A DNA stretch of 64,000 nt from Epithemia pelagica. Its lineage: Eukaryota > Protista > Bacillariophyta. The translations under genes and the position numbers were made by a program. The stretch spans positions 6,014,001 through 6,078,000 of the forward strand of contig OX337229.1 in assembly GCA_946965045.2 (NCBI GenBank), given 5' to 3'. The notes below the pieces were generated by a model, which saw only the letters and a list, made by a program, of their open reading frames with translations, had not been told where the DNA came from and searched no databases. Positions 38,544 to 64,000 of the stretch are shown here, in pieces (position 1 is the first letter of the stretch; each line of letters opens with the position of its first letter).

Positions 38544-39299
38544 TGTTAGGATTCTCACCTTTAACTAGGTGATGGTGGAATCTACAACACATCGACTGAT
38601 GCTAGTATTTTATGGCATCCGATGACATTTTCCTAAAAGTGAGAAAAGAATGTCGGCATGCTCGCGAAACTATAAATTTGGCCACGGCATGCTCGCAGTG
38701 CACGCGTTATCGGCGACCGCTCGGATATTAACTATGGCCCAACACGTGCGCGCCCAAAACTATCAAGTGCGCGCCTCTACTATCCGAGTACGCGCATCCA
38801 CGATTCGACCTAACGGTCTATGTAATCAAAGCACGAATCACGATCACGCGAGACCATATCTCTGTTCCCACAAATCCAAGAATGCAAACAGCAACGCGCC
38901 CAGGACAAGACTTATACCACGACAAAGCAAGAGCTGTTGCATCCCATACATGTTATCCATCACCCTATACATTCAATACACACCAATGCCGGTCTACTCC
39001 AACCAGTGAGGACCTATCACACCAGATCCATGGCCGTATACAAGAGCAAGGACTTCGGCACCATCAACCACCTTAGTTAGTAATCGTCTCACAATCATTA
39101 ATATCACCATTTTAACACTCATCTTAAGACTAACCTCTTATCAGTGGACCGACTGCCCCCACCCACGGCGGACTTCGACTTGCAACTCTTCTCTGACCCG
39201 TGGAGGATTGTTGTATCGGTTGGTGATCGATTGTCGGCTCAGCGAGCCTTTTACCCAACTACCTATTACCCTTCTGAATTCTCAATGAGAGTTCTGCTA
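38544..39299 (+). repeat. 5' LTR (TGTTAG...CTGCTA)
   Basis: No difference from the 3' LTR in the lines compared by eye; the embedded 119-aa and 64-aa ORFs translate identically. Confidence 0.93.
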
Positions 39300-39318
39300 G
39301 ATTAACAGTCTCATCGCT
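39300..39318 (+). promoter_or_regulatory. Primer-binding site complementary to the D-stem/anticodon arm of a tRNA-Asn(GUU)
   Basis: GATTAACAGTCTCATCGCT; reverse complement AGCG-A-TGAGA-CTGTTAA-TC. It abuts the LTR end. Confidence 0.75.
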
Positions 39319-39803
39319 CATTGCCCTGCAGTCGCATTGGAGATCATACTTACCCATCTACATTGAGTACAGATTGAGCTACACCAACAAACAAGAGTTA
39401 GAGGTCAAAGCTACCCAACCCAACAACAGGGCCAGCCTGGCTAAGGCTAGGGTCATCAACCCTCTCCTATTCCAGGACCTCAAGCTGGACCAGGACTTCG
39501 TGCAACTACCTTCCCAATACTCACCTGACCAGTACTTTGCTGAGGACTACGAGCAAGACGAGGAAGCTACCATTATTCCTGACTCCCCGGTTCAACTCGA
39601 TCACCGCAACGAGTCCGGAAGTGACCAAGGATAAGTATCTTTAAGTAGTTTCCACAACAAACCAGAGACAAAACCGAGTTCCGCACATCCGGGTTCCCAG
39701 CACAACACACATCCGGGTACTTACATACGTGGCACACACGTGGTACATCCGGGTTCAGATCACACCACACATTAAATAAACAACGAACCAACCATATACT
39801 ACC

Positions 39804-41717: not shown

Positions 41718-42023
41718 TCGCTTCCAAGTGAACCCAACGGCAAGCAAGCTGACATTGTTTTCATTTGTAGCAAAGGTGAAGATCCATCCACGCAAATTCC
41801 AACGATCAAACATGATGACACTATTGGACAACCTTTCCTTGTTTATGATCCAGAGGAAAATGGGGAGCAACCACAACCGTATAATGGGGAGCAACCACAA
41901 CCGTGTCTTATAAGATGCGTCATTGATTTAGAACAAGATGCTCTCAAGCAAGAAGACTGTATCAAGTACACTTTCTGCAAATCCATTTCCGACATTGACA
42001 AGATAATTTCATACCGTCAACAT

Positions 42024-43154
42024 ATGGAATACATCAAACAGGACAACCAAGCACAGGAAACTGAAGATGACGTTTTCCAGTTCAGAGACGTTGTTGCAGA
42101 TCAAGAACCGTCAAGTATTAGCAACAATCCTGACTACAAAAGAAGTCACTGTAATATACTTGTTGATTGGGAGACTGGGGCGATGATCTATGAGCCTCCG
42201 TCACTCGTGGTAAATGATGCCTATGCCAAGAAACATGATCTATTGAATGAACTTGGATGGAAACATCTCAAGCATTTTGTCAAGACCAGTAAATGCCTTG
42301 TTCAAGCTGCCAAACAGCAGTCAAGAATCAAGCAAGTCTGTCGTTCCATCAAGTACAAGTTTGGTTATCAAGTTTCAAAGACAAATGAAGAATTAGTTGT
42401 TTTGTTAGACAAGCAACATGGTAAAAGAAAGTGGCACAACACTACCGAAGTTGAGCTCTTTCAGGCTTCACTGATCCAATCCCTCACAAAAGTCAAGGAT
42501 TGCGTTCAAGCTCAGTGCAAGAGAAGGGAAATGATAAATGCATCACCAGAAGAGTATCACAAGAACAAGATTCGAATCCATCTTGTAAAACATGATGATA
42601 GTCGCCCAGCACTTCTCATCACAGACGAGGCTTTTACCAAAGAACCAGTTGAGGCAATCTTTTTGTGTACTACTTCCATTCACAACTTCCATACAACCAC
42701 CTGTCTTGGGATTCTCAATGATATGGATATATGGGGAGCAAAAGTTGGAATTGCACACGACCTGGAAGCTTTATCTGGAGAGAAGATCTTGATAGTTGCA
42801 AGACAAGAACTCAAGGAATCAGGTCACATCTTGATTACGCACAAGGCATCCAAGGGATTAAAATCTTCAGGAGCATGTCGGCATGACTGTTTCTTTGACA
42901 CCCCCATTGATATGGATTTGTCACCAACTAAAGCAGATCCCAATGTTTGGATGAAGAAGGCACCTGGGGAGCATAGCTCAAAGGGCATCGACAAGACCTA
43001 CCAACTCAAGAATGATGACTATGAGAACATCCAGGAGACATTCTCAACAAGCATTGGAAATTCTCAAAAGTATGGACCATGTTCAAGATCATATTCTTCT
43101 GGGGAGGAAACGTTCAGAAGCATGACAAGGAAAATAACAATCCTCACTCGATGA
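42024..43154 (+). pseudogene. Decayed copia pol (integrase-RT linker and RT N-terminal part), 376-aa open frame
   Basis: 'NPDYKRSHCNILVDWETG..YEP', 'AYAKKHDLLNELGWKHLK', 'KYKFGYQV', 'KIRIHLVKHDD', 'KASKGLKSSGA' and 'PTKADPNVWMK'. No YVDD and no RNase H. Confidence 0.85.
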
Positions 43155-43159
43155 ATTGT

Positions 43160-43165
43160 GGGGAG
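43160..43165 (+). promoter_or_regulatory. Short polypurine tract (GGGGAG)
   Basis: Immediately precedes the 3' LTR TG. Confidence 0.7.
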
Positions 43166-43921
43166 TGTTAGGATTCTCACCTTTAACTAGGTGATGGTGG
43201 AATCTACAACACATCGACTGATGCTAGTATTTTATGGCATCCGATGACATTTTCCTAAAAGTGAGAAAAGAATGTCGGCATGCTCGCGAAACTATAAATT
43301 TGGCCACGGCATGCTCGCAGTGCACGCGTTATCGGCGACCGCTCGGATATTAACTATGGCCCAACACGTGCGCGCCCAAAACTATCAAGTGCGCGCCTCT
43401 ACTATCCGAGTACGCGCATCCACGATTCGACCTAACGGTCTATGTAATCAAAGCACGAATCACGATCACGCGAGACCATATCTCTGTTCCCACAAATCCA
43501 AGAATGCAAACAGCAACGCGCCCAGGACAAGACTTATACCACGACAAAGCAAGAGCTGTTGCATCCCATACATGTTATCCATCACCCTATACATTCAATA
43601 CACACCAATGCCGGTCTACTCCAACCAGTGAGGACCTATCACACCAGATCCATGGCCGTATACAAGAGCAAGGACTTCGGCACCATCAACCACCTTAGTT
43701 AGTAATCGTCTCACAATCATTAATATCACCATTTTAACACTCATCTTAAGACTAACCTCTTATCAGTGGACCGACTGCCCCCACCCACGGCGGACTTCGA
43801 CTTGCAACTCTTCTCTGACCCGTGGAGGATTGTTGTATCGGTTGGTGATCGATTGTCGGCTCAGCGAGCCTTTTACCCAACTACCTATTACCCTTCTGAA
43901 TTCTCAATGAGAGTTCTGCTA
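43166..43921 (+). repeat. 3' LTR
   Basis: Direct repeat of 38544-39299, followed by the TSD and resumption of the satellite in register. Confidence 0.93.
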
Positions 43922-46900
43922 ACTTGTTCCTGTTCGACTTGAGGCTATAGTACTATAAGATTTGTCGCCATTTGTTTCGCGTGAGAACAACTCTAGTATC
44001 CACAGGTTTTGGAATGTGAAACTGTTGTCACTTATAGTCCACGCCAGAAGGTATCTGATAATGCAATGCAATTTGGGTTCGGCAACTTTGATGGTATACT
44101 TGTTCCTGTTCGACTTGAGGCTATAGTACTATAAGATTTGTCGCCATTTGTTTCGCGTGAGAACAACTCTAGAATCCGCATGTTTTGGAATGTGAAAAAG
44201 GTGTCACTTATAGTCCACGCCATAAGGTATCTGATGATGTAATGCAATTTGGGTTCGGCAACTTTGATGGTATACTTGTTCCTGTTCGACTTGAGGCTAT
44301 TGTACTATAAGATTTGTCGCCATTTGTTTCGCGTGAGAACAACTCTAGAATCCACAGGTTTTGGAATGTGAAACTGTTGTCACTTATAGTCCACGCCATA
44401 AGGTATCTGATAATGCAATGCAATTTGGGTTCGGCAACTATGATGGTATACTTGTACCTGTGCGACTTGAGGCTATACTACTATAAGATTTGTCGCCATT
44501 TGTTTCGCGTGAGAACAACTCTAGTATTTCATGTTTTGGAATGTGAACCTGTTGTCACTTATAGTCCACGCCATAAGGTATTTGATAATTCAATGCAATT
44601 TGGGTTCGGCAACTTAAATGGTATACTTGTTCCTGTTCGACTTGAGGCTATATTACTACAAGATTTGTCGCCATTTGTCTCGCGTGAGAACAACTCTAGA
44701 ATCCACAGGTTTTGGAATGTGAAACTGTTGTCACTTATAGTCCACGCCAGAAGGTATCTGATAATGCAATGCAATTTGGGTTCGGCAACTTTGATGGTAT
44801 ACTTGTTCCTGTTCGACTTGAGGCTATAGTACTATAAGATTTGTCGCCATTTGTTTCGCGTGAGAACAACTCTAGTATCCACAGGTTTTGGAATGTGAAC
44901 CTGTTGTCACTTATAGTCCACGCCAGAAGGTATTTGATAATGCAATGCAATTTGGGTTCGGCAACTATGATGGTATACTTGTACCTGTGCGACTTGAGGC
45001 TATACTACTATAAGATTTGTCGCCATTTGTTTCGCGTGAGAACAACTCTAGTATCCACAGGTTTTGGAATGTGAACCTGTTGTCACTTATAGTCCACGCC
45101 AGAAGGTATTTGATAATGCAATGTAATTTGGGTTCGGCAACTTTGATGGTATACTTGTTCCTGTTCGACTTGAGGCTATAGTACTATAAGATTTGTCGCC
45201 ATTTGTTTCGCGTGAGAACAACTCTAGTATCCTCATGTTTTGGAATGTCAAACTGGTGTCACTTATAGTCCACGCCATAAGGTATCTGATAATGCAATGC
45301 AATTTGGGTTCGGCAACTATGATGGTATACTTGTACCTGTTCGACTTGAGGCTATACTACTATAAGATTTGTCGCCATTTGTTTCGCGTGAGAACAACTC
45401 TAGAATCCGCATGTTTTGGAATGTGAAAAAGGTGTCACTTATAGCCCACGCCATAAGGTATCTGATGATGTAATGCAATTTGGGTTCGGCAACTTTGATG
45501 GTATACTTGTTCCTGTTCGACTTGAGGCTATTGTACTATAAGATTTGTCGCCATTTGTTTCGCGTGAGAACAACTCTAGAATCCACAGGTTTTGGAATGT
45601 GAAACTGTTGTCACTTATAGTCCACGCCAGAAGGTATCTGATAATGCAATGCAATTTGGGTTCGGCAACTTTGATGGTATACTTGTTCCTGTTCGACTTG
45701 AGGCTATAGTACTATAAGATTTGTCGCCATTTGTTTCGCGTGAGAACAACTCTAGAATCCGCATGTTTTGGAATGTGAAAAAGGTGTCACTTATAGTCCA
45801 CGCCATAAGGTATCTGATGATGTAATGCAATTTGGGTTCGGCAACTTTGATGGTATACTTATTCCTGTTCGACTTGAGGCTATTGTACTATAAGATTTGT
45901 CGCCATTTGTTTCGCGTGAGAACAACTCTAGAATCCACAGGTTTTGGAATGTGAAACTGTTGTCACTTATAGTCCACGCCATAAGGTATCTGATAATGCA
46001 ATGCAATTTGGGTTCGGCAACTTAAATGGTATACTTGCTCCTGTTCGACTTGAGGCTATAGTACTATAAGATTTGTCGCCATTTGTTTCGCGTGAGAACA
46101 ACTCTAGTATCCACATGTTTTGGAATGTCAAACTTTTGTCACTTATAGTCCACGCCATAAGTTATCTGATGATGCAATGCAATTTGGGTTCGGCAACTAT
46201 GATGGTATACTTGTACCTGTTCGACTTGAGGCTATAGTACTATAAGATTTGTCGCCATTTGTTTCGCGTGAGAACAACTCTAGTATCCACAGGTTTTGGA
46301 ATGTGAACCTGTTGTCACTTATAGTCCACGCCATAAGGTATTTGATAATGCAATGCAATTTGGGTTCGGCAACTTTGATGGTATACTTGTTCCTGTTCGA
46401 CTTGAGGCTATATTACTACAAGATTTGTCGCCATTTGTTTCGCGTGAGAACAACTCTAGAATCCACAGGTTTTGGAATGTGAAACTGTTGTCACTTATAG
46501 TCCACGCCAGAAGGTATCTGATAATGCAATGCAATTTGGGTTCGGCAACTTTGATGGTATACTTGTTCCTGTTCGACTTGAGGCTATAGTACTATAAGAT
46601 TTGTCGCCATTTGTTTCGCGTGAGAACAACTCTAGTATCCACAGGTTTTGGAATGTGAACCTGTTGTCACTTATAGTCCACGCCATAAGGTATCTGATAA
46701 TGCAATGCAATTTGGGTTCGGCAACTATGATGGTATACTTGTACCTGTGCGACTTGAGGCTATACTACTATAAGATTTGTCGCCATTTGTTTCGCGTGAG
46801 AACAACTCTAGTATCCACAGGTTTTGGAATGTGAACCTGTTGTCACTTATAGTCCACGCCATAAGGTATCTGATGATGTAATGCAATTTGGGTTCGGCAA

Positions 46901-46941
46901 CTTTAATGGTATACTTGTTCCTGTTCGACTTGAGGCTATAG
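43922..46941. repeat. 176-bp satellite block (about 17 monomers)
   Basis: Head-to-tail monomers with 176-bp periodicity (ORF-track artefacts recur every 176 bp). A representative monomer is about 40% GC by hand count. Confidence 0.98.
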
Positions 46942-47449
46942 CATCTAAGGAAGGAACGGTACGCCAGTTTATGGCGGTTTAATTATCGATAAGAAAGCAC
47001 CCCTAAGCGCATCCTACTAGAATCATCCGCGCGCAGGACACGCGCACACCTACAAGAACACGCGCACACCTACAAGAACATGCGCATGGCCCTTCCTCAC
47101 GTTATTACTAAAAATGTGCTTTCCAGAACCAGCAAGCGCATGACCCACATTTCACCAACTTCAACACCATGCACAGTCAAGAACCAATAGTCATCACATC
47201 CCTCCACCTTCATGCACAGTCAAGAACCAACAGTCATCACATACCCTCCTATGTATGCACTCATCCTTGATTGTGTCACATCACCATCATGCGCATTACT
47301 CCAGCATCAAGTGCAAGCAAGTTGAACACAGTGCATTTAACTAACACCATGCACACACTCCCACTAACAACCAGCGAATGAATGGAACACAATACATGTA
47401 GCTATATAGGAGTAGTATATGAAATGAAACCAATTGTCACTCTGATCAA

Positions 47450-49442
47450 TCACTGCCATGACCGTTTTCGTGGCCTTTTAGAAGGCCTTGTCACAGCATC
47501 ATCATCTGCATACCCCATTCGAGAGCGATATTGCCCATTGAGAAACATCATGAACCAGATACCACGGTCGCCTGCTCTGTCTTCACGAGCGATTTTCTCT
47601 TCCATATCCTCAAAATAGTCCATACCATCCTCATTCATACATCGACTTGAGTTCCAACTGCCTGAATATTTGAAGCGAGGATACCTTGCTGAGGATGTAT
47701 CAATCATTTGATCAACACCATTTTCATTGTACCACCTTGGATTTAATTCAAATAGTTTTGCCTTGAAAGTGGTCTTGCCCATGTGAGTCCACACATCCCA
47801 GCAATCCACAAGGATGGTCAATATGAACGCCTCGTCACTTGAAGTGAATAACTTCAAGGCCTTTTCGCAATGTTCCTTTCCCTGCTGCTCAGTGTGGTCA
47901 CCAAAATTGAAATCAATCACGGTTTTATGCATATTCTCACCATAGACACATGGACCAAACAATTGCAAGAGATATGAATAGGCATAGTTGTCACACTTCT
48001 CTCCTCTCAATAACAGAAATTCTTCCAGGGTAGGCATTGGCCCAAAGTCTTCACAGTCGTTCAAAAGGCATGGATACCTCCGCTGGAAATTACTGTCACG
48101 CCATAGATCAAGACCCACATGTTCTAGATTCAGCAACAAATTATCTCACATCTCTTTATGAGAAGACGACGTGATGAACCAACACATTCACTCTTCGATT
48201 GACACTTACTTATGAATGCTTTTCGCATGGAAGCCAGAACATTTGATCGTTTGCTTCGGAACTTGTCAAGCATATAAGGTGAATGTTCAATCCACCACTC
48301 CTCTTGTTGTTTTGCATCCGTAATACCTTTGCCTTTGAAATAGTGCTCAGTAAAATATGTTTTGCCATACTTCCCCCAAAGACCATTCGGATCTGCCTTA
48401 GTATCTTCGGACATGGAGAAATACTTGACATAACGCCATGCCACCTTCCGAACAAATGTATCAAAGAACTTCTCCGATACCACCTCAGGCTTTTTCTTCG
48501 GCTTTTGCTTCTTACTCTTGTCCTTTTCAACAGAACCTTTGTGTGTAGTGGATGTTACAATCGTACTTGTCGGGCAAGATGATTGATTTTGGTATACTGT
48601 TGTTGTCTGTGTTTCCTGTGCCAACTGATTTTGAATATCGTCTTGTAGAAGAGTTTCCATCGCCTGATCAGGCCCTGTTGTTAGCAAAGTAGATGACGAA
48701 GATGACGACATATCCGAAAGGGAAGAAACGTCGTTAGCAAAGGTATCACCTGATGCATTCAACCCACAAACACCCCCGTCATTAGAGCCGTCTCACCGAC
48801 AAATTGTCCTCCTCCATTTTGTGCATCTAACAACTTACTGACAAGTCCTCCAGCAGGAAAATGTCTTTCATTAGGATCAAAATCATCTCCATCATACTCA
48901 CTGGGTCCATTGCTCATATTCTGCAATGCTCGTTGCATTTCAGGTCCAGTGAGAATATTTACACCGACATCGTCTTCCTCCATGTTATTAACTGCCGTGT
49001 TTGTTGGTTGCGCAAAACCAGATGATGGTTGTGTTCTCAGCCCACCCTGTTCATTATTGCTATCATCTGCTGAAGTCACATCGGCTCCATCTCTTTCTGA
49101 ATTTGTTGCCTGCTCCAAAAGATTACCACTCCCTTCCACAGTTGTGCCTTCTTGTGCTTGTGCTTGATCGTTGTTCATCGAGATCTGTTCCTCTTCTTCC
49201 TCGTCATCAGAACTATCTTCTTGGAGTACTAAACCTCCATTGGCTGCTGCAATAAGAGCATCTTTGTTTGTAATTGTCCCATCCTTGTTAGGAAGATTCT
49301 CTTTATTTCTTGTTGCCACTGCTGCCAAGATGCTTCTTCGTTGTCGTTCAACCTCTTTCTGATTACTTCCATAGTTTGCATTTCGGACTGCTAAGGGTCG
49401 ACGCCTCGTTGAAGCTGCATTTCTGGTGGTGACTCCTGCCAT
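47450..49442 (-). CDS. Transposon accessory protein (about 600 aa, 3 exons), possibly TnpA-like
   Basis: Exons 49442-48839, 48749-48210 and 48123-47450 are joined in phase by GTAAGT...AG introns of 89 and 86 nt. C-terminal 'LFTSSDEAFILTILVDCWDVW...KYSGSW...EDGMDYFEDMEEKI'; basic C-terminus. Confidence 0.7.
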
Positions 49443-50006
49443 CGTTTATCTTGGATGCTCCGTCTGATTTATGACAAGGATATGAACAAGAGCAGGGTGA
49501 CAACAAGTCCTCTGATGGACAACCATTCAAATTCAAATGCTGGAATGCTCCATGTTTGAATCATAAACTCCGTGTTTGAACGATGGTCCTTTGGAGAACG
49601 TATGAAGATGAGCATAGGTGGTTTCAAGTACATCATACTTGTCAGATGGAACATTGGTGCATGGGTTTGAATGATTGTCATTTCCTTTCTAATGTCGACA
49701 GTGTAGGTATCCTCGGCATTGACACAGTGTTTGAATTCCAATCGCTGCTATCACCGTTGGTATATAACCCGGCAGGCTGGATTGGATTAAGTAAATACAC
49801 ACGACCGTTTGAAAATATTATGATCCGTTCATGTACATAAGCGATTTTCAGTCGCTTTTATGCACCAACGTCGGCCGATCCACCCAATGCGGAGAAATTC
49901 TGATATATGCCACAAGATTGACCACCGATGTCTCAATTTGCAGAAATCGATTACAGAGCATTTTTCATTCCAAACCAAAATCTAAAACCACCAGCATCGT
50001 ACCATC

Positions 50007-53000
50007 ATGGGCCAGCGTCGTAAAGTAAAAAAGAAGTCGCGAAAGAGATGCTCAAATACAAGCCAACAAGAGGAGTCCTTCATATCCTTTCAAGTGTGTC
50101 GTTTCTGTCAATCACGTTTCGATGCAAGAGGAATCAGCCGTCACGAAACAGTTTGTGAATTGAAAATGAACACACAAAGGAAATGGCCAAATGTTGGCGA
50201 TGACAACAATGATTGTGCCAGTAATATGAATGCTGATCCAATGAATATTGATATCATGGACAATGAAACCACTATTCCGCATGCTGACCCACCAAAAGCA
50301 TACTATGTACCTGGTGATACAGATAATATTATTCTGCGCAACAGCAAGGAGTGCCCGGTTGATTTTCCTGCGTTCCTTGATAGAGATGGGAAGCAATTGA
50401 AACTTCATAAACACGATGCAGCCTTGGTCTCACTTATGATGTTACTTCGGAAAGCTGGTTGCCCCAAATATTTGTACAATTCGATCCTGGCATGGTCGAG
50501 TGACACATACTCAAGATGCGGTCCTGGGTTCTTCCTGGACAACCATTCAAAGAGGAAAACGTTCATCGAAAAGTTTTCTACCAAAGGTTTCAATTATCCC
50601 AAGGCAAAATTTTTCCCGGTACCAATGGAATTCACCCAAAAACAGGGTGTGGTTGTACCAGAGAGTGAGAAATCAATAACAACACCAGTATTTGATTTGA
50701 TCAGTCAACTACAGCGTGTATTACAAGATCCCGATGCAACCAAGAAAGAAAATACGATCCTCGATGATGACGATCCGTATCGTCCATATGTTCCAAACAA
50801 GCACATCCAAAATATACAAGACGGAGAAGTATTTCGGAAAACAGTGGAAAAATATAGAGATGATCCAGATGCCTTCGTGGTTGGTCTTGTCTGTTATATG
50901 GACAAAACACATGCAACAGGGGATGGAAGATATACATCGGAGCCTGTTGTAATGGTGCCATCTTTTCTAACGGAAACACAAATGAGGAAAGCAAGGCGAC
51001 AGATCATCCTTGGGACTATTACAGACATGGAAAGAAAATCATCGGCGGCAAAACATATCCTCGATAAAGGGACTCCTTGCCGAAATTATCATGCTCAATT
51101 GACTAAGATCCTCGAAGGTCTTGTCAGTATCCAAAAACAGGAAGGTTTATGGATGAAACTACGCCTCCATGGGATTATCAAAGTTGTCCCTTTGATATTG
51201 CCAATGATTGTTGTCAAAGGAGATGGGAAGTCTCAGGATAACCTTGCAGGTCGGTATGCCTCGCATCATCCAAGTGTTGGAAGACTATCATGGTGTTGCA
51301 ATATTAAACCAAGGGATAGCAGATACCCATGGCATGAATGTTCTTATATCAACGCTGCAAGTACATACAAAATGTGCTTGAATGCATTGGGTCTTAATGA
51401 AAATCGAGAAAAACTGACTGAACAGGATGTTGATTACCAAGAGAGAGACAATGATACATTTTCAACTTTGACTGTTCCTACCTGTTTGAGCACATCACAA
51501 GTAAGTCAAGAAAATAGCAGAGATGGAGGGGTCAATACCCTTGTGTCAGCTGCAAAAACCCAATTGCATGACATGGGACAATATGCAGTCGATCTTTGTT
51601 TTTCCAAGGTTTACCTGGGTGAAGGAACCAATTCTGAACATGGGATTTTCTCGGCCAGTAGTTGTGATGTTCTTCATACATTGAAATCTGGGATAATGAG
51701 ATACATCATGATTGACTTTTTCACGTTGATGACAAAAACTGAACGGGCCATGTTTGATTATGTCTACAATTCAATCTTTCGGGCAAGTAGACAGACTGTA
51801 TTCTCGTATTCATCGAAACTTGGATATCCTGGAACATCATTCTCGACCGGGATCAGTAACCTGTCAAAAGTAACTGCCAATGAGTGGGTTGGGATCATGT
51901 TTGCTTCAGCAGCTCTATGTGCCACTGCCAGAGGTCGCCTTATATTTGCGAAGAATATGGCAAAGAAATGGAACAAGGTGGTTGCGGAATGGAAAAAACG
52001 ACAAGCAAAGCAAACATCCAAAACCACCAACAAGACATGTCAAGCGGACATGGATCAAGTGCAAGAGACAAGTGAACCTATTGCTGACAATGAGGATGAT
52101 ACTCCACCAGATGAAGAGTACGAACGTACACGTCTTGATGATGATGATAGTGTTGACATTGATATCACAGCTGAAACTGTTTTTGATGATGACCCAGTTG
52201 CTTACAGGTCTATCTGGGATGTTGATGAGCGGGAACCATACATAGACTTCCTGCATCTATTCGAGACTCTTTTGTGTTTCAACAGCTGGATTTGTATGGA
52301 TACATTCTGGGAAACAGACCCAGACTCACAAGAAGGACAAACAACAGCTTCCAAGTCTCTCGAATCAGTGCGGATTTTGATGGATGGCATCAGGAGATAT
52401 GCACCCAGGCTCGATAAAAAAGGCAAATTGATGTCCAACGGGTGGATGATACCAAAATTCCACAATCTCATACACATTATACAACAGATTCAGAATTTTG
52501 GACCAGCACGACTGCTTGATGTGGAGTCAGAGGAAAGTAATCACAAGGAAATTGTGAAATTGAATGCAAAAACGGTACAGAAACGTGGAAAAGGAATTTT
52601 TGAGTCGCAACTTGCAGAAAATATCTGGTGGATGCAAAGCTTGGAAATGCTGCAGGAAGCAACAGGTCTTGAAGAAGATCATGTCACCTTTCTCCAGGAA
52701 GGGAAGTCGCCTTATGAAATAAGGAGAAAAAAGGGATCCCAAAACCAACTCCCTACCACATCAACCTCAAATAGTCGTGGAACGGTCATAGTAGTATCCA
52801 TGACCAGAGAAAAATGTTTGATTCCAGTACCTCACACGAACGTACACACTTCTGGTGATAATCAAGACCAGTCATCAAATGAAATAGAAAAGGATCTTCC
52901 GTCTCCATTGGGTATGTCGATTCAAGTTCCAGGCACGACCAGAAAAGAACAAGACGGATCAAACCGAAACCAGACGAGTAGTGTACACAGGCGATTGACA

Positions 53001-53060
53001 GCAGCACCACACGAGGAGGATGTGGTATCAGTGAATATCGAATTCCAACGCCTAGAATGA
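50007..53060 (+). CDS. Plavaka-like transposase
   Basis: N-terminal 'CRFC...RHETVC' zinc finger. Also 'GLVCYMDKT', 'EPVVM', 'NYHAQLTKIL', 'IVVKGDGKSQD', 'CDVLHTLKSG' and 'PKFHNLIHIIQQIQNFGP...DVESEESNHK'. The frame is open for 1017 aa; a 3' intron is possible. Confidence 0.8.
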   Translation: MGQRRKVKKKSRKRCSNTSQQEESFISFQVCRFCQSRFDARGISRHETVCELKMNTQRKWPNVGDDNNDCASNMNADPMNIDIMDNETTIPHADPPKAYYVPGDTDNIILRNSKECPVDFPAFLDRDGKQLKLHKHDAALVSLMMLLRKAGCPKYLYNSILAWSSDTYSRCGPGFFLDNHSKRKTFIEKFSTKGFNYPKAKFFPVPMEFTQKQGVVVPESEKSITTPVFDLISQLQRVLQDPDATKKENTILDDDDPYRPYVPNKHIQNIQDGEVFRKTVEKYRDDPDAFVVGLVCYMDKTHATGDGRYTSEPVVMVPSFLTETQMRKARRQIILGTITDMERKSSAAKHILDKGTPCRNYHAQLTKILEGLVSIQKQEGLWMKLRLHGIIKVVPLILPMIVVKGDGKSQDNLAGRYASHHPSVGRLSWCCNIKPRDSRYPWHECSYINAASTYKMCLNALGLNENREKLTEQDVDYQERDNDTFSTLTVPTCLSTSQVSQENSRDGGVNTLVSAAKTQLHDMGQYAVDLCFSKVYLGEGTNSEHGIFSASSCDVLHTLKSGIMRYIMIDFFTLMTKTERAMFDYVYNSIFRASRQTVFSYSSKLGYPGTSFSTGISNLSKVTANEWVGIMFASAALCATARGRLIFAKNMAKKWNKVVAEWKKRQAKQTSKTTNKTCQADMDQVQETSEPIADNEDDTPPDEEYERTRLDDDDSVDIDITAETVFDDDPVAYRSIWDVDEREPYIDFLHLFETLLCFNSWICMDTFWETDPDSQEGQTTASKSLESVRILMDGIRRYAPRLDKKGKLMSNGWMIPKFHNLIHIIQQIQNFGPARLLDVESEESNHKEIVKLNAKTVQKRGKGIFESQLAENIWWMQSLEMLQEATGLEEDHVTFLQEGKSPYEIRRKKGSQNQLPTTSTSNSRGTVIVVSMTREKCLIPVPHTNVHTSGDNQDQSSNEIEKDLPSPLGMSIQVPGTTRKEQDGSNRNQTSSVHRRLTAAPHEEDVVSVNIEFQRLE

Positions 53061-56000
53061 TCGTTGTGTCCAGGATGACTGTCTCTAAGTGACAAATGGT
53101 GCCTGGAATGTTCGTTGTATCCAGGGAATCTCTCCCAATCCATCGGATGTCGATTAGACCATTGATTGTGGCTATCTCTGTATACCGAATGGTGCCTTGT
53201 ATGTTCTCTTGAATGTTCGTTGTATCCAGAGAATCTCCTCCAATCCATCGAATGTCGATTAGACAATTGATTTTGATTATCATGTCTTCTTTTTCTATCC
53301 CGGTAAGTGTTTTCCATGATTTGATCTCTTCTCCCTCTAGACTCGTCTTGGTGGTTATCATGGTATCCAGGTTGGTCTTGTCGTTCAATGACTCCTCTTC
53401 TAGTTTGTTGGTTATCTTGATCGAAATGTGAATGACGAGACCCATGATAATCTGATGTATTAGATCCTCTCGATCCTGGATGATCATCATTGAATCGATT
53501 CTGTCCATGCTGACAATACACTGGCCTGTCATGTTCAGGTTGCGAACCCCACTCATTTGTTCTGGGGCTTCGAGCTATCGACAGGACGTTGTTCTGATTC
53601 CGTCCTCCCCATAGCCCATGTGGATTCTCTCTCTTGTCCTTGGTTCTTTCGTTATCATGTTGGGTTTGCTCTGTTCTATGTCTTTCTTCAGGCAGCTCAC
53701 TCCGGTTACCCCAATTCGCAGGCATTGCAACGGAACGTGATGAGTTATTTCCTCCCCGTTGCTGGTATTTAGGCTTCTCACCATCTGGTGACTGATAGAT
53801 TGCTTTGTGTTCAGAAGGATGAGTATATGTTCTTTGAACAGAACGTGTCATAGGACAGAAGTACAATAGACTTTGAATATCCTGGCTGCACACCATACAT
53901 GTGTTGTGGCCCCGCTGCATCCAATCTCCAACACATTCCCGACAAAATGTATGTCTACAAAGAAACAGTTCGCAATCCACTTTTCTGGTCATACAAATCG
54001 AACAAACCTCGGGCTTGTAATTTGCCTCACCTCCTCTTTGTTCTAGTGTTGACGGCTTGTTACTCACAGGTGATTTTTTTGATGATTCTTCAGGGCGTCC
54101 CTCAATCGTAGTTGTAGTGTCTTCGACTGTTTCCCTATGTCCCTCTTCAGGGAATCCCTCGCTCGTAGTTGTAGTTTCTTCCACTGTTTTCTTGTGTCCC
54201 TCTATCTTCTCCGCACCAAACATGTGGATGTTACTCTTGATCTTTTGTCCACACTGGGGACACCATACATTATGATACTTGAACCGTATTCGTAAGCAAT
54301 TTCCGTGAACCAGATGTCCACATGGGATGAGGGTACAGACTTCGCTGTCTGTATCTGTTTTCAATGCCCTGTTACAGCATACACAAGAATCTGGACAATA
54401 TACAACGGTCGGTAGCAATCGATTTATATCTCTCTTGGAAAGTTTGGAGTCAAGTAACACCTCCTTGGGTTCTAATCCCACCTTCGGGCACGGTATGAAC
54501 AATATGTCACCATCCGTAGTCCACGTCTCTGAACACCCACCATCAGATAGATCGACGTTCTCCGTGTATTCGTATTTATCGGTACCACGTGAAAACCCCA
54601 CTTCAACAGGATCGTCGTCGCTGTTGCCATCGAAATTGTCAGGTCCCAACACCAAAGGAGAAATCGAATTGCCTTCGACAGCATGCTCTAGTCCTCTCGA
54701 AAATTCATTATTGTACCGTATTTGATTACTCGAAAAACAATTGGATATCGTCATACTCATGTCTATCTGACCTTCTTTCCGACCCGGGTTTGGTCGACTA
54801 CTCATTATGTTTCCAAGCATTCTGATCACGATAGCTTGTGGCATTGGCTTTGGAGTATCCTTCTTAGGTTCTGGCATTTTCACAATGCGATATCGCCACT
54901 TGTTACATTCCTTGTTTGTATCATGTGTTGTCTCATCTTCTTCCACTAATGATGGGTCATAACATAGACTGACTGGCGGGGAACCTTTTGACGTATTGAC
55001 CAGGTCCCATTTCCGTAGTACATGACGCGTCGTTCCTTCCCAGTATTGGTCTGATCGATTATGTATTGGTTCGTAGATATGAAGTATCTTTTTGTCGATT
55101 TCGAAGGCCAATAAAGCTGGGTCGCTGACATCAGTTGCTGTTGTCAAGGCAATGATCGCCAATATCAGTGTGTTCGGATCCTGTTGTCTCCATGATGACA
55201 TAGGAATTTTCTTAGGAAATGGGTTCCTGATTGCTTCATCAAATGTTACTTTGTCAACATATACTAGGTTCTGATGGTTGTGATGGACCATCAATTTCAA
55301 ACAAGTATAGAAAGACTCAATCGGCATGCCCGTCCTTGAAGTGTTGTAGCAAAGATCTCTCCGACGATGTCTATGTGGGATATGCAAAACACGCGTTGTA
55401 GGGTCCTGGTCATTCATCAACCCACTGTAAGACATGCATAGTGTGCACCTAAATAATGTCTTGATTTCGACATGCGTGTTGTCCTTCCCCATACTCTTAG
55501 CATACTGGGTTGCTAGCTTCATGGCCGACTTGATGTTCTCGTTGTTTCTGTTAGTTTGTTTTTCTGCGAACTTGTCTAAGTAACCGTCACCAATGTTGTC
55601 GATGGATTCATTCGAGTCCCATGAGTCTTTTCTTCTCTTCTGGTTTTCTATAGGATCAAGAACGTGTGGAATTTCAATGAAAGGCGGTGGTACCACACCA
55701 TCACCTGTCTCCTCATTTCCCTTGTTTATGGAAGCACAACGTCTCTAAGACAAAGAGATCAATCATTTTTGAGATTGTCTAATCCTTCTCAATTCTTGAC
55801 AAGTCGCTCGAACATCTTACCTCGTTGTCTGCGGTTTTTTCATTGTCGTCGCTTATAATCTTCCTGACCTCTTCCACACGGTCTGATTTGAGGACGACTT
55901 GGTTCGACGTTGTAATGGAAGTTGGTAGTACTTGTTCCTTTCTCTCGTTAGTAGGATCATTACCAGCCACGACCTTCTGTCTCTTTTTTGCCGGCGAGTC

Positions 56001-56945
56001 TGTACTCCGACGTTGCACGGCAATTTCTTTCGATTTCCTGGCAGACAGTAACTCTTGTTTTTCTATATAAACCAGTAGATCGTAGAACATACCGCCATCG
56101 TCTCCGTTTCTTCCATATTGTACCAAAGAATCTCTTTCTTCAAGGTACATCTTGAACCATGTGTCAGGCATCGTATACAACAGTGCTTTCTCCATTTGGA
56201 TATTGGAAATCACGTCCATGTTCTCGTCCGATGTCGATTCTGAGATGAAACGGTGTATGGCCACCATATGTTCGATAACCCATGCGATTTTACCAACAGG
56301 TACGAGACGCGGTTTCCTGTAAAGGGAGGAATCATCTAGAAGGTATCGTTTCAATGCTTCTCCAATCCCACCGATCCCCTTGCGTGTCTTCTTAGAGACT
56401 AAGCCATGAGAGGAAAGAAATCTGATAATGGTTTGTCTCAGATTCTCAGTACTGTCTATCACTGTCGTCCCAAATGCCTGATTCCAAATATTGGAAACAG
56501 GACTGTAGAGAGTCTTTTTGAACAACAGTCGAGCAACCATTGGAGTCAACTTGTCATCATCATCCATCTCGTTCTTAATTCTTGTGAAACAGAAAACGGA
56601 GTGACAGATGATATCTTGGAATGCAGGCGAATAACAGATTGGTAGGAATATCTTCACATAATGGCCGTCATGTGGTACCTCCACTGTTGTCCATTTTCCT
56701 GATTTGTCTTGGAAAACACTTTCATACCAATTGAGGACACTTTCGTATGTAATGGGCATAATACCGGTGTAGTGAGATTCCTCGCTTGTGTGTGTTCGAA
56801 GTGTATGATTGGTACCAGAAACAGTCATAGTCGACACGTCCTTTCTTTTGTTTCGCACTTCATCATTCATTGAAGAAGGGTCACCAGGATTCTTGGCGGT
56901 CGGTGGCTTTTTGTAGCGAGGGCCCTTGATGCGGTTGCCCGCCAT
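52922..56945 (-). CDS. Transposon cargo protein of about 1300 aa: unknown N-domain, degenerate Ulp1-like region, two RING fingers and a repetitive tail
   Basis: The 388-aa and 924-aa ORFs join in phase 0 via a GTAAGA...TTAG intron at 55820-55745. RING 1 'CVCC...PCGHLVHGNC...CPQC'; RING 2 'CSIC...CRHTFCREC...CMVC'. Ulp1-like 'LLAFEIDKKILHIYEP' lacks the catalytic His and Cys. Confidence 0.75.
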
Positions 56946-56962
56946 TTTGTACTTGTCACGAT

Positions 56963-58082
56963 GCGCTTTTTGTGTAGCGTCTTTGTTTCAACAACAACAA
57001 CAACAAGGGTAGTCGAGGAAGCGCTTTAATTGTAGCGTCTTTGAGACAACCTTGTGTACTTGTCTAAACAGTAAAAAGTGTGCGCTGAATTGTGTAGCGT
57101 CTTTGGTTTGGTCCTGAACTCTGGTGGTAACAAAACAACAACCAAATCGAAGGAATACACTACGACGCGCTTTATGTGTAGCGTCTTGTTCGTTGTGATC
57201 CAACAATCGGTGCCAGAATTTGCTACTCCAAAACCAGGGGTTGGTTGGTTGTCCAAGCAATCTCGCGACAAGAATAGAACAGAAGCAACTGGCTACCACC
57301 GTGTCACACTGCTTGCTTTGGGTCTGTTCTATTCAAGTCGGAGTATCACGAGGACAGGAGGGTTCTTGATAAACAATCTAACAGATAGCCCGAAACCGCT
57401 TTAATTGTAATAGCGTGATTGGAATGAAGGACAGAGCTGAGTGAAACAAGCAACAATCAGACAGATGCCCCAAGCCGCTTTAATTGTAGCGTGGTGATTG
57501 GAATGGCAGAGCTGCAAGATAGTGCAAGTGTCAAAGATAAGACAAATGTCGACAATATTTCGAATGCTCTGGTGGTCGTTCTTCTTCTTGGGTTCCTCTT
57601 CTTCTTGTTTTCCTGTTGTAGCGGTTTTGGAGTGAAGGTCGTGGTTGAAAGGAAGCAAGCAACAATCAGACAGATGCCCCAAGCCGCTTTAGTTGTAGCG
57701 TGATTGGAATGGCAGAGCTGCAAGATAGTGCAAGTGTCAATGTCTCGAATGCTCTGGCCGTGCTTGAGTTCCTCTTCCTCTTCTTCTGGTGCAGCGGTTT
57801 TGGAGTGAAGGTGGCTGAAGAGGAAGCAAGCAACAAAAAGGTGGCTGAAAAGGAATCAAGCAACAATCAGACAGATGCCCCAAGCCGCTTTAATTGTAGC
57901 GTGATTGGAATGGCAGAGCTGTTAGGTTGGTGAAAGAAGTTGGATAGGTGAAAGGATTGAAAAGGGAATCTCGGCAGAGAGAAAGCAAGCAACAAAAAGG
58001 TGGCTGAAAAGGAACCAAGAAACAATCAGACAGATGCCCCAAGCCGCTTTAATTGTAGCGTGATTGGAATGGCAGAGCTGTT
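56963..58082. repeat. Array of nine CGCT-N(8-11)-AGCG palindromes; four sit inside a repeated ~58-bp core
   Basis: Motifs near 56964, 57022, 57083, 57168, 57397, 57476, 57686, 57886 and 58045. Core CAATCAGACAGATGCCCCAAGCCGCTTTAATTGTAGCGTGATTGGAATGGCAGAGCTG starts at 57454, 57663, 57864 and 58023. Confidence 0.85.
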
Positions 58083-58802
58083 AGGTTGATGAAAGAAGCT
58101 GGATAGATAATGGGATTGAACAGGGGAATCTCGATAGCGTTGGGTGATCGATTGCTGTTGTTGCTGCTGCTGCTGTTGTTGTTTGTTGTGGTGTGTTGGG
58201 TGGAGGTGGAGGGAGATGAATGAGCATCGATTCTGGTGGTCGTTGATTGTTGAATGACTAGTATGCTAAGTTGTTCGGTTTTGTTCGATGGATCAGAGTG
58301 TCGAGTTGGTAATCCCCGCGGTTAGGGTGATTGGGAAGGAGGATCCATCTGAGACATTCTTTGGGACATCCATGTGCGTCAGTCTTTCTGGCAGCTGCTG
58401 TGTGATGTGGTGGGAGTGGAAATTCGTGATTCAAAGGTGAGGGGACAGACGCTTGCGCATGAGGGTTGCGTCATGCGCGTCTCGGGGGGGTCGAGCGCGC
58501 CAGATAGTTGTAGTGCGCATTATCGGAGTGTGGCGCGCGTTATTCGTGGTTTGATCGCGGGCTTGTGCGCATTAAAATTGTTGCATGCGCGTGATAGTCA
58601 GCTCGATCTCTAGAACTAGCTAGAGAAATGTGCATTGTTAGACCTAGATTTGCAGATTTAGTTGGGAAAGCAGGATTATAGTTAAAAACTGCGCATATAA
58701 AAATAAACTGCGCATAAAAAATTTTAATTCGGCGAATTTTTTCTAGAAATTCGCTTTTGGGGGTGGAAATCAAGCGCCAGGGCCCATTTCCCTCCTTAGA
58801 TG

Positions 58803-61800
58803 AGTACTATAAGATTTGTCGCCATTTGTTTCGCGTGAGAACAACTCTAGTATCCACAGGTTTTGGAATGTGAAAATGGCGTCACTTATAGTCCACGCCA
58901 TAAGGTATCTGATGATGTAATGCAATTTGGGTTCGGCAACTTTGATGGTATACTTGTTCCTGTTCGACTTGAGGCTATAGTACTATAAGATTTGTCGCCA
59001 TTTGTTTCGCGTGAGAACAACTCTAGAATCCGCATGTTTTGGAATGTGAAAAAGGTGTCACTTATAGTCCACGCCATACGGTATCTGATGATGTAATGCA
59101 ATTTGGGTTCGGCAACTTTGATGGTATACTTGTTCCTGTTCGACTTGAGGCTATAGTACTATAAGATTTGTCGCCATTTGTTTCGCGTGAGAACAACTCT
59201 AGAATCCACAGGTTTTGGAATGTGAACCTGTTGTCACTTATAGTCCACGTCATAAGGTATCTGATAATGCAATGCAATTTGGGTGCGGCAACTTTGATGG
59301 TATACTTGTTCCTGTTCGACTTGAGGCTATAGTACTATAAGATTTGTCGCCATTTGTTTCGCGTGAGAACAACTCTAGTATCCACAGGTTTTGGAATATG
59401 AACCTGTTGTCACTTATAGTCCACGCCATAAGTTATCTGATGATGCAATGCAATTTGGGTTTGGCAACTTTGATGGTATACTTGTTCCTGTTCGACTTGA
59501 GGCTATAGTACTATAAGATTTGTCGCCATTTGTTTCGCGTGAGAACAACTCTAGTATCCTCATGTTTTGGAATGTGAAAATGGTGTCACTTATAGTCCAC
59601 GTCATAAGGTATCTGATAATGCAATGCAATTTGGGTGCGGCAACTTTGATGGTATACTTGTTCCTGTTCGACTTGAGGCTATAGTACTATAAGATTTGTC
59701 GCCATTTGTTTCGCGTGAGAACAACTCTAGTATCCACAGGTTTTGGAATGTGAAAATGGTGTCACTTATAGTCCACGCCATAAGGTATCTGATGATGTAA
59801 TGCAATTTGGGTGCGGCAACTTTGATGGTATACTTGCTCCTGTTCAACTTGAGGCTATTGTACTATAAGATTTGTCGCCATTTGTTTCGCGTGAGAACAA
59901 CTCTAGAATCCACAGGTTTTGGAATGTGAAAATGGTGTCACTTATAGTCCACGCCATAAGGTATCTGATAATTCAATGCAATTTGGGTTCGACAACTTTG
60001 ATGGTATACTTGTTCCTGTTCAACTTGAGGCTATTGTACTATAAGATTTGTCGCCATTTGTTTCGCGTGAGAACAACTCTAGAATCCACAGGTTTTGGAA
60101 TGTGAAAATGGTGTCACTTATAGTCCACGCCATAAGGTATCTGATAATTCAATGCAATTTGGGTTCGGCAACTTAAATGGTATACTTGTTCCTGTTCGAC
60201 TTGAGGCTATAGTACTATAAGATTTGTCGCCATTTGTTTCGCGTGAAAACAACTCTAGTATCCACAGGTTTTGGAATGTGAAAATGGTGTCACTTATAGT
60301 CCACGTCATAAGGTATCTGATAATGCAATGCAATTTGGGTGCGGCAACTTTGATGGTATACTTGTTCCTGTTCGACTTGAGGCTATACTACTATAAGATT
60401 TGTCGCCATTTGTTTCGCGTGAGAACAACTCTAGTATCCACAGGTTTTGGAATGTGAAAAAGGTGTCACTTATAGTCCACGCCATAAGGTATCTGATGAT
60501 GTAATGCAATTTGGGTGCGGCAACTTTGATGGTATACTTGTTCCTGTTCCCCTTGAGGCTATTGTACTATAAGATTTGTCGCCATTTGTTTCGCGTGAGA
60601 ACAACTCTAGAATCCACAGGTTTTGGAATGTGAAAATGGTGTCACTTATAGTCCACGCCATAAGGTATCTGATGATGTAATGCAATTTGGGTTCGGCAAC
60701 TTTGATGGTATACTTGTTCCTGTTCCACTTGAGGCTATTGTACTATAAGATTTGTCGCCATTTGTTTCGCGTGAGAACAACTCTAGAAACCACAGGTTTT
60801 GGAATGTGAAAATGGTGTCACTTATAGTCCACGCCATAAGGTATCTGATGATGCAATGCAATTTGGGTTCGGCAACTTAAATGGTATACTTGTTCCTGTT
60901 CGACTTGAGGCTATTGTACTATAAGATTTGTCGCCATTTGTTTCGCGTGAGAACAACTCTAGAATCCACAGGTTTTGGAATGTGAAAATGGTGTCACTTA
61001 TAGTCCACGCCATAAGGTATCTGATGATGCAATGCAATTTGGGTTCGGCAACTTAAATGGTATACTTGTTCCTGTTCGACTTGAGGCTATTGTACTATAA
61101 GATTTGTCGCCATTTGTTTCGCGTGAGAACAACTCTAGTATCCACAGGTTTTGGAATATGAACCTGTTGTCACTTATAGTCCACGCCATAAGGTATCTGA
61201 TGATGTAATGCAATTTGGGTTCGGCAACTTTGATGGTATACTTGTTCCTGTTCGACTTGAGGCTATAGTACTATAAGATTTGTCGCCATTTGTTTCGCGT
61301 GAGAACAACTCTAGTATCCACAGGTTTTGGAATGTGAAAATAGTGTCACTTAAAGTCCACGCCATAAGTTATCTGATGATGCAATGCAATTTGGGTGCGG
61401 CAACTTTGATGGTATACTTGCTCCTGTTCAACTTGAGGCTATTGTACTATAAGATTTGTCGCCATTTGTTTCGCGTGAGAACAACTCTAGTATCCACAGG
61501 TTTTGGAATGTGAAAATGGTGTCACTTATAGTCCACGCCATAAGGTATCTGATGATGTAATGCAATTTGGGTGCGGCAACTTTGATGGTATACTTGCTCC
61601 TGTTCAACTTGAGGCTATTGTACTATAAGATTTGTCGCCATTTGTTTCGCGTGAGAACAACTCTAGAATCCACAGGTTTTAAAATGTGAAAATGGTGTCA
61701 CTTATAGTCCACGCCATAAGGTATCTGATAATTCAATGCAATATCTGATGATGCAATGCAATTTGGGTTCGGCAACTTTGATGGTATACTTGTTCCTGTT

Positions 61801-64000
61801 CGACTTGAGGCTATAGTACTATAAGATTTGTCGCCATTTGTTTCGCGTGAGAACAACTCTAGAATCCGCATGTTTTGGAATGTGAAAAAGGTGTCACTTA
61901 TAGTCCACGCCATAAGGTATCTGATGATGTAATGCAATTTGGGTTCGGCAACTTTGATGGTATACTTGTTCCTGTTCGACTTGAGGCTATACTACTATAA
62001 GATTTGTCGCCATTTGTTTCGCGTGAGAACAACTCTAGAATCCACAGGTTTTGGAATGTGAAAATGGTGTCACTTATAGTCCACGCCATAAGGTATCTGA
62101 TAATGCAATGCAATTTGGGTTCGGCAACTTTGATGGTATACTTGTTCCTGTTCGACTTGAGGCTATAGTACTATAAGATTTGTCGCCATTTGTTTCGCGT
62201 GAGAACAACTCTAGTATCCACAGGTTTTGGAATGTCAAAATGGTGTCACTTATAGTCCACGCCATAAGGTATCTGATGATGCAATGCAATTTGGGTGCGG
62301 CAACTTTGATGGTATACTTGTTCCTGTTCGCCTTGAGGCTATAGTACTATAAGATTTGTCGCCATTTGTTTCGCATGAGAACAACTCTAGAATCCACAGG
62401 TTTTGGAATGTGAAAAAGGTGTCACTTATAGTCCACGCCATAAGGTATCTGATGATGTAATGCAATTTGGGTTCGGCAACTTTGATGGTATACTTGTTCC
62501 TGTTCCACTTGAGGCTATTGTACTATAAGATTTGTCGCCATTTGTTTCGCGTGAGAACAACTCTAGAATCCACAGGTTTTGGAATGTGAAAATGGTGTCA
62601 CTTATAGTCCACGCCATAAGGTATCTGATGTTGCAATGCAATTTGGGTTCGGCAACTTAAATGGTATACTTGTTCCTGTTCGACTTGAGGCTATTGTACT
62701 ATAAGATTTGTCGCCATTTGTTTCGCGTGAGAACAACTCTAGAATCCACAGGTTTTGGAATGTGAAAATGGTGTCACTTATAGTCCACGCCATAAGGTAT
62801 CTGATGATGCAATGCAATTTGGGTTCGGCAACTTAAATGGTATACTTGTTCCTGTTCGACTTGAGGCTATTGTACTATAAGATTTGTCGCCATTTGTTTC
62901 GCGTGAGAACAACTCTAGTATCCACAGGTTTTGGAATATGAACCTGTTGTCACTTATAGTCCACGCCATAAGGTATCTGATGATGTAATGCAATTTGGGT
63001 TCGGCAACTTTGATGGTATACTTGTTCCTGTTCGACTTGAGGCTATAGTACTATAAGATTTGTCGCCATTTGTTTCGCGTGAGAACAACTCTAGTATCCA
63101 CAGGTTTTGGAATATGAACCTGTTGTCACTTATAGTCCACGCCATAAGGTATCTGATGATGCAATGCAATTTGGGTTCGGCAACTTAAATGGTATACTTG
63201 TTCCTGATCGACTTGAGGCTATTGTACTATAAGATTTGTCGCCATTTGTTTCGCGTGAGAACAACTCTAGAATCCACAGGTTTTGGAATGTGAAAATGGT
63301 GTCACTTATAGTCCACGCCATAAGGTATCTGATGTTGTTATGCAATTTGGGTGCGGCAACTTTGATGGTATACTTGCTCCTGTTCAACTTGAGGCTATTG
63401 TACTATAAGATTTGTCGCCATTTGTTTCGCGTGAGAACAACTCTAGAATCCACAGGTTTTGGAATGTGAAAATGGTGTCACTTATAGTCCACGCCATAAG
63501 GTATCTGATAATTCAATGCAATTTGGGTTCGACAACTTTGATGGTATACTTGTTCCTGTTCGACTTGAGGCTATAGTACTATAAGATTTGTCGCCATTTG
63601 TTTCGCGTGAAAACAACTCTAGTATCCACAGGTTTTGGAATGTGAAAATGGTGTCACTTATAGTCCACGCCATAAGGTATCTGATAATTCAATGCAATTT
63701 GGGTTCGACAACTTTGATGGTATACTTGTTCCTGTTCGACTTGAGGCTATAGTACTATAAGATTTGTCGCCATTTGTTTCGCGTGAGAACAACTCTAGTA
63801 TCCACATGTTTTGGAATGTGAAAAAGGTGTCACTTATATTCCACGCCATACGATATCTGATGATGCAATGCAATTTGGGTGCGGCAACTTTGATGGTATA
63901 CTTGTTCCTGTTCGCCTTGAGGCTATAGTACTATAAGATTTGTCGCCATTTGTTTCGCATGAGAACAACTCTAGAATCCACAGGTTTTGGAATGTGAAAA
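58803..64000. repeat. 176-bp satellite block (about 29.5 monomers), continuing beyond the window
   Basis: Head-to-tail monomers; one has a 20-bp internal duplication near 61725-61760. Confidence 0.98.

Follow-up and report, generated by a model that had tools for sequence, protein, structure and literature searches.

An internally deleted Plavaka-type transposon in a satellite array of Epithemia pelagica, very probably derived from a young family of giant elements

A 64,000-bp stretch of the Epithemia pelagica genome (GCA_946965045.2, contig OX337229.1, positions 6,014,001 to 6,078,000), which we refer to throughout as the window, carries a transposable element of 11,861 bp at positions 46942-58802, embedded in a 176-bp satellite. 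The question raised by this locus is whether the element is a complete transposon with its own cargo genes or what is left of a larger one. An initial annotation of the window had taken it to be intact. Comparison with other copies in the same assembly (ENA ERZ21939226), made through protein-cluster look-ups and fetched contigs, shows at the level of sequence that the element is an internal-deletion derivative and not a complete transposon. We consider it very probable that it belongs to a young family of giant elements (18.2-18.5 kb, about 50 copies) of the Plavaka lineage with PlavakaB-like termini.

The window copy is an internal-deletion derivative

The assembly contains 53 variants of the element's transposase, at least five of which are 1285 aa (amino acids) long, and 47 variants of its RING-finger protein, with full-length forms of 1683-1757 aa. 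The forms present in the window, an open reading frame (ORF) of 1017 aa for the transposase and one of 924 aa for the RING protein, are each confined to one contig. Four copies (L005, L006, L008 and L009) measure 18.2-18.5 kb and are mutually 98.4-99.7% identical. In these copies gene A, with its three ORFs, is followed in order by the 1285-aa transposase, ORFs of 95 aa and 342 aa, an ORF of 313 or 318 aa, the RING ORF of ~1700 aa and an ORF of 388 aa; the full-length parent thus carries more ORFs than the three genes of the initial annotation. Aligned to L004 and L005, the window copy is collinear, with 98-99% identity on either side of one missing block. The junction and the two ORFs that it truncates are as follows.

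53047..53048: internal-deletion junction, blunt; positions 6127-12501 of L005 (6,375 bp) are missing, from alignment to full-length copies
50007..53060, + strand: truncated Plavaka-type DDE transposase, an open ORF of 1017 aa consisting of family residues 1-1014 and three foreign residues
52922..55696, - strand: truncated RING-protein ORF of 924 aa, with 883 aa from the N-terminal half of the ~1700-aa protein

Lost with the deletion are the last 271 aa of the transposase, a pair of paralogous Cys-rich genes and, from the RING protein, the C-terminal ~877 aa. Beyond the junction the 924-aa ORF continues for its last 41 aa in the antisense direction through the transposase gene, and the RING protein proper stops at about residue 825 of ~1700. 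An autonomous member of the family would be recognized by a 1285-aa transposase and the full gene set in ~18.5 kb, and the window copy lacks these. Deletions of other extent are found elsewhere in the family: L001 has lost 5.7 kb, the RING gene included, and in L010 1.6 kb is gone from within the transposase gene. The idea that the window copy and L001 stand for separate subfamilies, each with a central part of its own, was dropped, as the full-length copies show both to be deletion derivatives. The identity among copies, 98-99.7%, supports the view that the family is young, as had been suspected from the window sequence.

Transposase, termini and insertion site

The assignment of the element to Plavaka follows from homologues of its transposase. 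An exhaustive phmmer search of 1.8 billion representative proteins with the 1017-aa ORF yielded 1350 homologues at E ≤ 1e-3, among them hits with E values from 1e-30 to 1e-160. Thirty homologues were aligned; 14 of these match the Pfam family PF18759 (Plavaka), with a best E value of 2.8e-12, and no other family was matched among them. A protein language model placed the nearest clusters to the ORF in Plavaka, with a score of 0.97. Together these comparisons show, as far as sequence can, that the ORF belongs to the Plavaka homology group as a divergent Plavaka-type transposase, and the Plavaka-like assignment made from the window alone was therefore sound. The candidate catalytic residues proposed at that time also hold up. 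In the 30-sequence alignment D299 (in YMDKTH), D406 (in GDGKSQD), E843 and H819 are invariant and H823 is nearly so (KFHNLIH), and the H819-x3-H823 motif is kept in the window transposase. The invariant cysteines C431 and C445 lie 13 residues apart, and a CxxC motif was not seen at that place.

The closest database protein, P0001, is 99% identical to the window ORF and 1285 aa long. Its last 271 aa are found nowhere in the window. The missing residues, 1015-1285, bear a HPNY...GPW.DW motif and form a C-terminal domain that is a conserved part of these transposases, since it is aligned in 26 of 28 distant homologues.

Both ends of the element can be read to the base, because the satellite into which it is inserted resumes in register. 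The parts of the junctions are listed here.

43922..46941: 176-bp satellite array, left flank; Tandem Repeats Finder gives period 176, 17.2 copies, 94% matches
46940..46941: AG, the last two satellite bases, left copy of the target-site duplication (TSD), read from the sequence
46942..46956, + strand: left terminal inverted repeat (TIR), CATCTAAGGAAGGAA, the same in every other copy
58788..58802, - strand: right TIR, TTCCCTCCTTAGATG on the + strand
58803..64000: 176-bp satellite, right flank, back in register; its first two bases, AG (58803-58804), are the right TSD copy

The satellite, which also occupies positions 38078-38544, breaks off at 46941/46942 after ...GAGGCTATAG and restarts at 58802/58803 with AGTACTATAAG... 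When one AG is taken out, the satellite consensus GAGGCTATAGTACTATAAG is restored. Because uninterrupted units of the satellite read GAGGCTATAGTACTATAAG as well, we regard the insertion as precise, with AG duplicated. The TIRs are 15 nt long, follow the pattern CATCTAAGGA[A/G]GGAA and are complementary at 14 of 15 positions (one mismatch). Many imperfect inverted repeats of 15 nt are listed by chance within 12 kb; the pair is accepted as real because it stands at both satellite junctions and recurs with 2-bp TSDs in six other copies. The termini of those six copies, from the same assembly, are identical to those of the window copy, and all seven copies that have both ends are flanked by perfect 2-bp TSDs (AG, TG, GA, TA, AG, CA, AC). 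In all copies the termini read CATCT..AGATG, matching the PlavakaB termini CATCA..TGATG at four of five positions. The bounds, TIRs, AG duplication and CATC ends that had been read from the window are thus borne out by the junction reads and by the other copies. Of the two properties that a wider survey of ends was expected to confirm, the 2-bp TSD was recovered, and a target preference was not: the seven TSDs have no obvious consensus.

The element's position in a satellite had suggested a specialization for heterochromatin. We rejected a heterochromatin or satellite preference of the family, for among the copies compared the satellite flanks the window copy alone and is absent from the DNA retrieved around the nine others (L001, L004-L011). 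The same satellite holds a second insertion, a long terminal repeat (LTR) retrotransposon of about 5.4 kb at 38543-43921 with ORFs of 637 aa and 376 aa. Its direct repeats (38543-38842 and 43165-43464) show 100% identity along 300 nt or more, and from its sequence it looks very young.

The features that lie between the termini and the two truncated ORFs are the following.

46957..47400, no strand: left subterminal region, with tandem repeats of 20 bp x2.5 (47038-47086) and 43 bp x2.2 (47168-47260) and ATGCGCAT motifs
47450..49442, - strand: accessory gene A, made up of consecutive ORFs of 227, 210 and 229 aa in which no known domain is seen
55779..56945, - strand: ORF of 388 aa with no assigned function; same strand as the RING ORF and upstream of it
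57819..58133, no strand: 159-bp tandem repeat, two copies, between the 388-aa ORF and the right end
58454..58715, + strand: right subterminal cluster of five TGCGCAT motifs, from a motif search

The window has ten TGCGCAT sites, nine of them no more than ~360 bp from one or the other end of the element, and by analogy with CACTA elements these subterminal repeats are candidate transposase-binding sites. Gene A is found in all copies. It is a conserved accessory gene, because homologues with 27-44% aa identity occupy the same divergent position in a sister Plavaka family of the same genome (L002 7427-12939, ERZ21939226 ctg1362l). The transposase of that sister family is 59% identical, its own TET-like protein, P0281, is on another contig, and the L002 copy is fragmented in appearance. 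A candidate 76-nt intron (GTAAGA...TTAG, 55820-55745) would, if spliced out, put the 388-aa ORF and the RING ORF into one reading frame. Copies differ in the number of ~159-bp units, which explains some of the variation in their length.

The Cys-rich genes that the window copy lacks are 318 and 342 aa long and are seen at L005 15702-17748 and also at L001 14153-16199. Their products, P0266 and P0251, are encoded convergently and are mutually paralogous (E 1e-8). Both contain ...FVW.FC... and ...NYMP.F..C... blocks, and neither matches a Pfam family. Another copy, L007 11019-20742, has two transposase-like ORFs in tandem (1079 and 1325 aa) and repeated ORFs of 95 and 314 aa, an arrangement that may reflect either the duplication of part of its interior or one family member inserted within another. 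Pieces of the element from window positions 52300-57300 occur at 95-99% identity and low depth in marine biofilm, sediment and seawater metagenomes (runs X4-X10); therefore the host, or a close relative that has the family, occurs in those samples.

The RING protein and its missing half

What cargo does the family carry? In a Pfam scan of the window ORFs the RING fingers alone were matched, and Plavaka, tnp2 and C48 were not. A RING-H2-like finger at about 54233-54385 and a C3HC4 RING at about 53870-54004 are both kept in the window ORF. Pfam zf-C3HC4 matches with an E value of 7.6e-8 and 32.5 bits (cut-off 21), zf-RING_2 with 31 bits (cut-off 27.3) in two stretches, and zf-C3HC4_3 with 29.8 bits (cut-off 27). 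By their C3HC4 and RING-H2 signatures the fingers are real, and E3 ligase activity is predicted for them. The initial annotation had proposed a ubiquitin/SUMO-type module. Of this module the RING fingers are borne out; the SUMO side is not, given that Peptidase_C48 (Ulp1/SENP) has no match at E ≤ 1 in the window ORFs or in P0203, the full-length RING protein, in a sequence search that a degenerate fold could conceivably escape.

The annotation had further proposed that this cargo takes the place of TET/JBP. In the full-length copies, by contrast, the RING protein runs on into a region that is likely to be a TET/JBP-like Fe(II)/2-oxoglutarate dioxygenase, as judged by motifs and by the company it keeps in a language model. 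Residues ~1300-1700 of P0203 hold the blocks SHYDIHDASVSFTIWTE and GIAIAWDGRIIRHGTS, which look like two strands of TET enzymes, the one with HxD and the one with the distal His. Both blocks are identical in the paralogue family P0281, which is 59% identical to P0203, and a 26%-identical relative on L012 keeps H-Y-D, R-H-x-T-S and the downstream Arg. Across these three proteins, at 26-58% identity, H287-Y-D289, H349 and R379 (numbering of their alignment, A4) are invariant, and this HxD...H...R pattern is the one expected of the iron-binding triad and 2-oxoglutarate-binding Arg of TET/JBP enzymes. Of the 100 clusters nearest to P0203 residues 1120-1702 in the language model, 66 are in Tet_JBP sets, and for the L012 homologue the figure is 68, with a top score of 0.96. 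Predicted models of these neighbours resemble Tet_JBP models, which is the one, indirect, indication of a double-stranded beta-helix fold. Whether or not the dioxygenase assignment holds, the sequences indicate that the cargo of the family would not be RING instead of TET/JBP.

The L012 relative was the only one found in a metagenome scan with the domain alignment; the same scan with a single protein found nothing, a scan of viral contigs for the TET-like domain found nothing, and phage genomes searched by tblastn with the L012 homologue gave no match. It is a 415-aa TET-like ORF on an unrelated metagenome or WGS contig (L012 1-3148, JFJP01048784.1), 24-26% identical to the C-terminus of the RING protein and without RING fingers, and it converges with a fragment of a Plavaka-like transposase (596 aa, 26% identity, E 1e-28). 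By sequence, then, it is an independent, distant case of a Plavaka transposase paired with a TET-like protein. The neighbourhood of another distant transposase homologue, P0026 (L013), contains no relative of the RING/TET protein.

Several observations weigh against our reading of the element and its parent family. The proposed check with the Plavaka profile failed in its direct form, in that a Pfam scan of the 1017-aa ORF gave no PF18759 match at E ≤ 1, and the family membership described above is transitive, passing through the 14 aligned homologues that do match. That the window transposase is inactive without its C-terminal domain is a presumption. For the TET-like domain, neither Tet_JBP PF12851 nor PHROGs nor PDB sequences gave a match at E ≤ 10, whether single proteins or a three-sequence profile were used and over several sub-ranges, and AlphaFold2 run on alignments of four and of three sequences returned a predicted local distance difference test (pLDDT) value of 29 both times. 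Finally, the deletion junction is carried by the assembly alone: among the contigs listed from three public runs of the organism, none bridges 53047/53048, and contigs break there exactly and then follow the full-length sequence on each side.

The last of these points bears on the very unlikely alternative that the 6.4-kb gap was created in assembly, through the collapse or mis-joining of a repeat, and that the satellite really houses a full-length copy. The presence of about 50 near-identical family copies would favour such an error. However, the junction is clean, collinear and in the same orientation, and it lies within a 335-kb contig; L001 and L010 have different internal deletions, as expected of class II elements; and the breaks in the public-run contigs are expected if the junction is rare and single-copy, because Logan contigs drop rare variants. 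It is extremely improbable that the window element is complete and autonomous, with three genes and a native cargo of RING/SUMO type rather than TET/JBP. Both ends are whole, the catalytic core is open with its D, D and E, and the RING fingers are real, but in full-length copies of 18.2-18.5 kb the transposase has 1285 aa and the RING protein ~1700 aa, the window ORFs are unique truncations of both, the C48/Ulp1 match is wanting, and the TET-like domain lies in the part that is missing.

A deleted copy could also have a function of its own, with the truncated transposase acting as a repressor or the RING-only protein keeping E3 activity. The KP repressor, which acts on P elements, is a parallel. 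All remaining ORFs of the window copy are open, the truncated ones included, and the copy is 98-99% identical to active-looking ones; yet a young copy would have open frames whatever its function, and this one is single, with no sign of spread or selection. We think it highly unlikely that the copy works in this way.

The history that best fits the preferred reading, a deletion derivative of a giant Plavaka-lineage element, is as follows. A cut-and-paste element of the EnSpm/CACTA-Mirage-Chapaev-Transib clade entered the 176-bp satellite and duplicated AG. A blunt deletion of 6,375 bp between 53047 and 53048 removed the probable dioxygenase domain with the rest, probably by abortive or interrupted gap repair or a similar error, by analogy with Ds and dSpm. 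The resulting copy is probably non-autonomous, and its intact TIRs and TGCGCAT clusters should allow mobilization in trans by the 1285-aa transposases of full-length copies. In those copies the RING-dioxygenase protein, if it acts as its analogues are proposed to, probably oxidizes methylated bases on the element and so helps it to escape silencing, and it may also ubiquitinate chromatin factors against silencing. A more far-reaching proposal, which we hold tentatively and think rather less likely to be right than wrong, is that a recently active giant Plavaka makes a single protein of ~1700-2100 aa in which two RING E3 fingers and a TET/JBP-like dioxygenase are fused, coupling ubiquitination to base oxidation as a self-directed anti-silencing activity. 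The window copy would then be a natural separation-of-function allele that keeps the RING half only.

Relation to known elements and significance

Plavaka was reportedly first named by Iyer et al. 2014. It has been placed in the EnSpm-Mirage-Chapaev-Transib clade, and PlavakaB has been defined by CATCA..TGATG termini with 2-3-bp TSDs (Kojima 2025, PMC12730594). The same work describes TET+ PlavakaB families in the Agaricomycete fungi Agaricus bisporus and Gymnopus confluens and an anti-silencing role proposed for fungal TET+ transposons (PMC12730594). The family studied here resembles fungal PlavakaB in its termini beginning with CATC, its 2-bp TSD and a transposase homologous to PF18759 members, and at the family level it shares with the TET+ elements a cargo that probably includes a TET/JBP-like dioxygenase. 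It differs from them in its host, a diatom-like alga, in its size of about 18.5 kb and in its several accessory genes. The dioxygenase-like domain, moreover, is the C-terminus of a ~1700-aa double-RING protein, a fusion not mentioned in PMC12730594; it is too divergent for PF12851, and the window copy has lost it.

In size the nearest parallel is the red alga Bostrychia moritziana, which has giant Plavaka elements of 17.4-19.1 kb with accessory genes PAG1-3; their cargo includes a DNA-methylase+SET protein and a ParB-like+oxygenase protein, and an anti-silencing role has been proposed for the accessory genes (bioRxiv 10.1101/2025.02.11.637652). These elements and ours have in common a similar size, a Plavaka transposase with several accessory genes, and tandem arrays beside the accessory genes. 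By its description the red-algal cargo is different from the double-RING+TET-like protein, two Cys-rich paralogues, gene A and 388-aa ORF found here. A comparable logic, in which a transposon protein counters silencing marks on its own family, may apply to the anti-silencing cargo VANC of the Arabidopsis VANDAL elements, as far as it is cited in bioRxiv 10.1101/2025.02.11.637652; the protein families are unrelated.

No description was found in the searchable literature of diatom Plavaka or EnSpm elements that carry such cargo, or of a fusion of RING to a TET-like dioxygenase, and to that extent the suggestion of an undescribed system stands. It does not extend to the CATC termini and 2-bp TSD, which are not new because they are the published PlavakaB signature. 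The deleted copy too has familiar counterparts.

Ds, derived from Ac, and dSpm/I, derived from En/Spm, are internal-deletion derivatives of autonomous class II elements. Like them, the window copy has whole termini and subterminal repeats, has lost part of its transposase gene and shares its genome with autonomous-looking copies. Unlike them, its deleted form is single-copy, and its mobilization in trans is what one would expect by comparison.

For annotation, the window contains a defective locus that is unsuitable as a reference for the family; read in isolation, it misleads on the cargo, which looks to be RING only, and on the length of the transposase. Its own contribution is the defective copy and the satellite insertion. 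The array takes up recent insertions, namely the Plavaka-type element and the LTR element with identical LTRs, and the insertion site is no evidence that the satellite is a preferred target of the family. The family as a whole extends the TET-carrying Plavaka of fungi and the giant Plavaka of red algae to a diatom-like alga, and it adds a RING-dioxygenase fusion that we have not found described. In this host group the methylation of transposons is known and its erasure is not. If the dioxygenase is active, the family would be a test case for the self-protection of transposons against DNA methylation.

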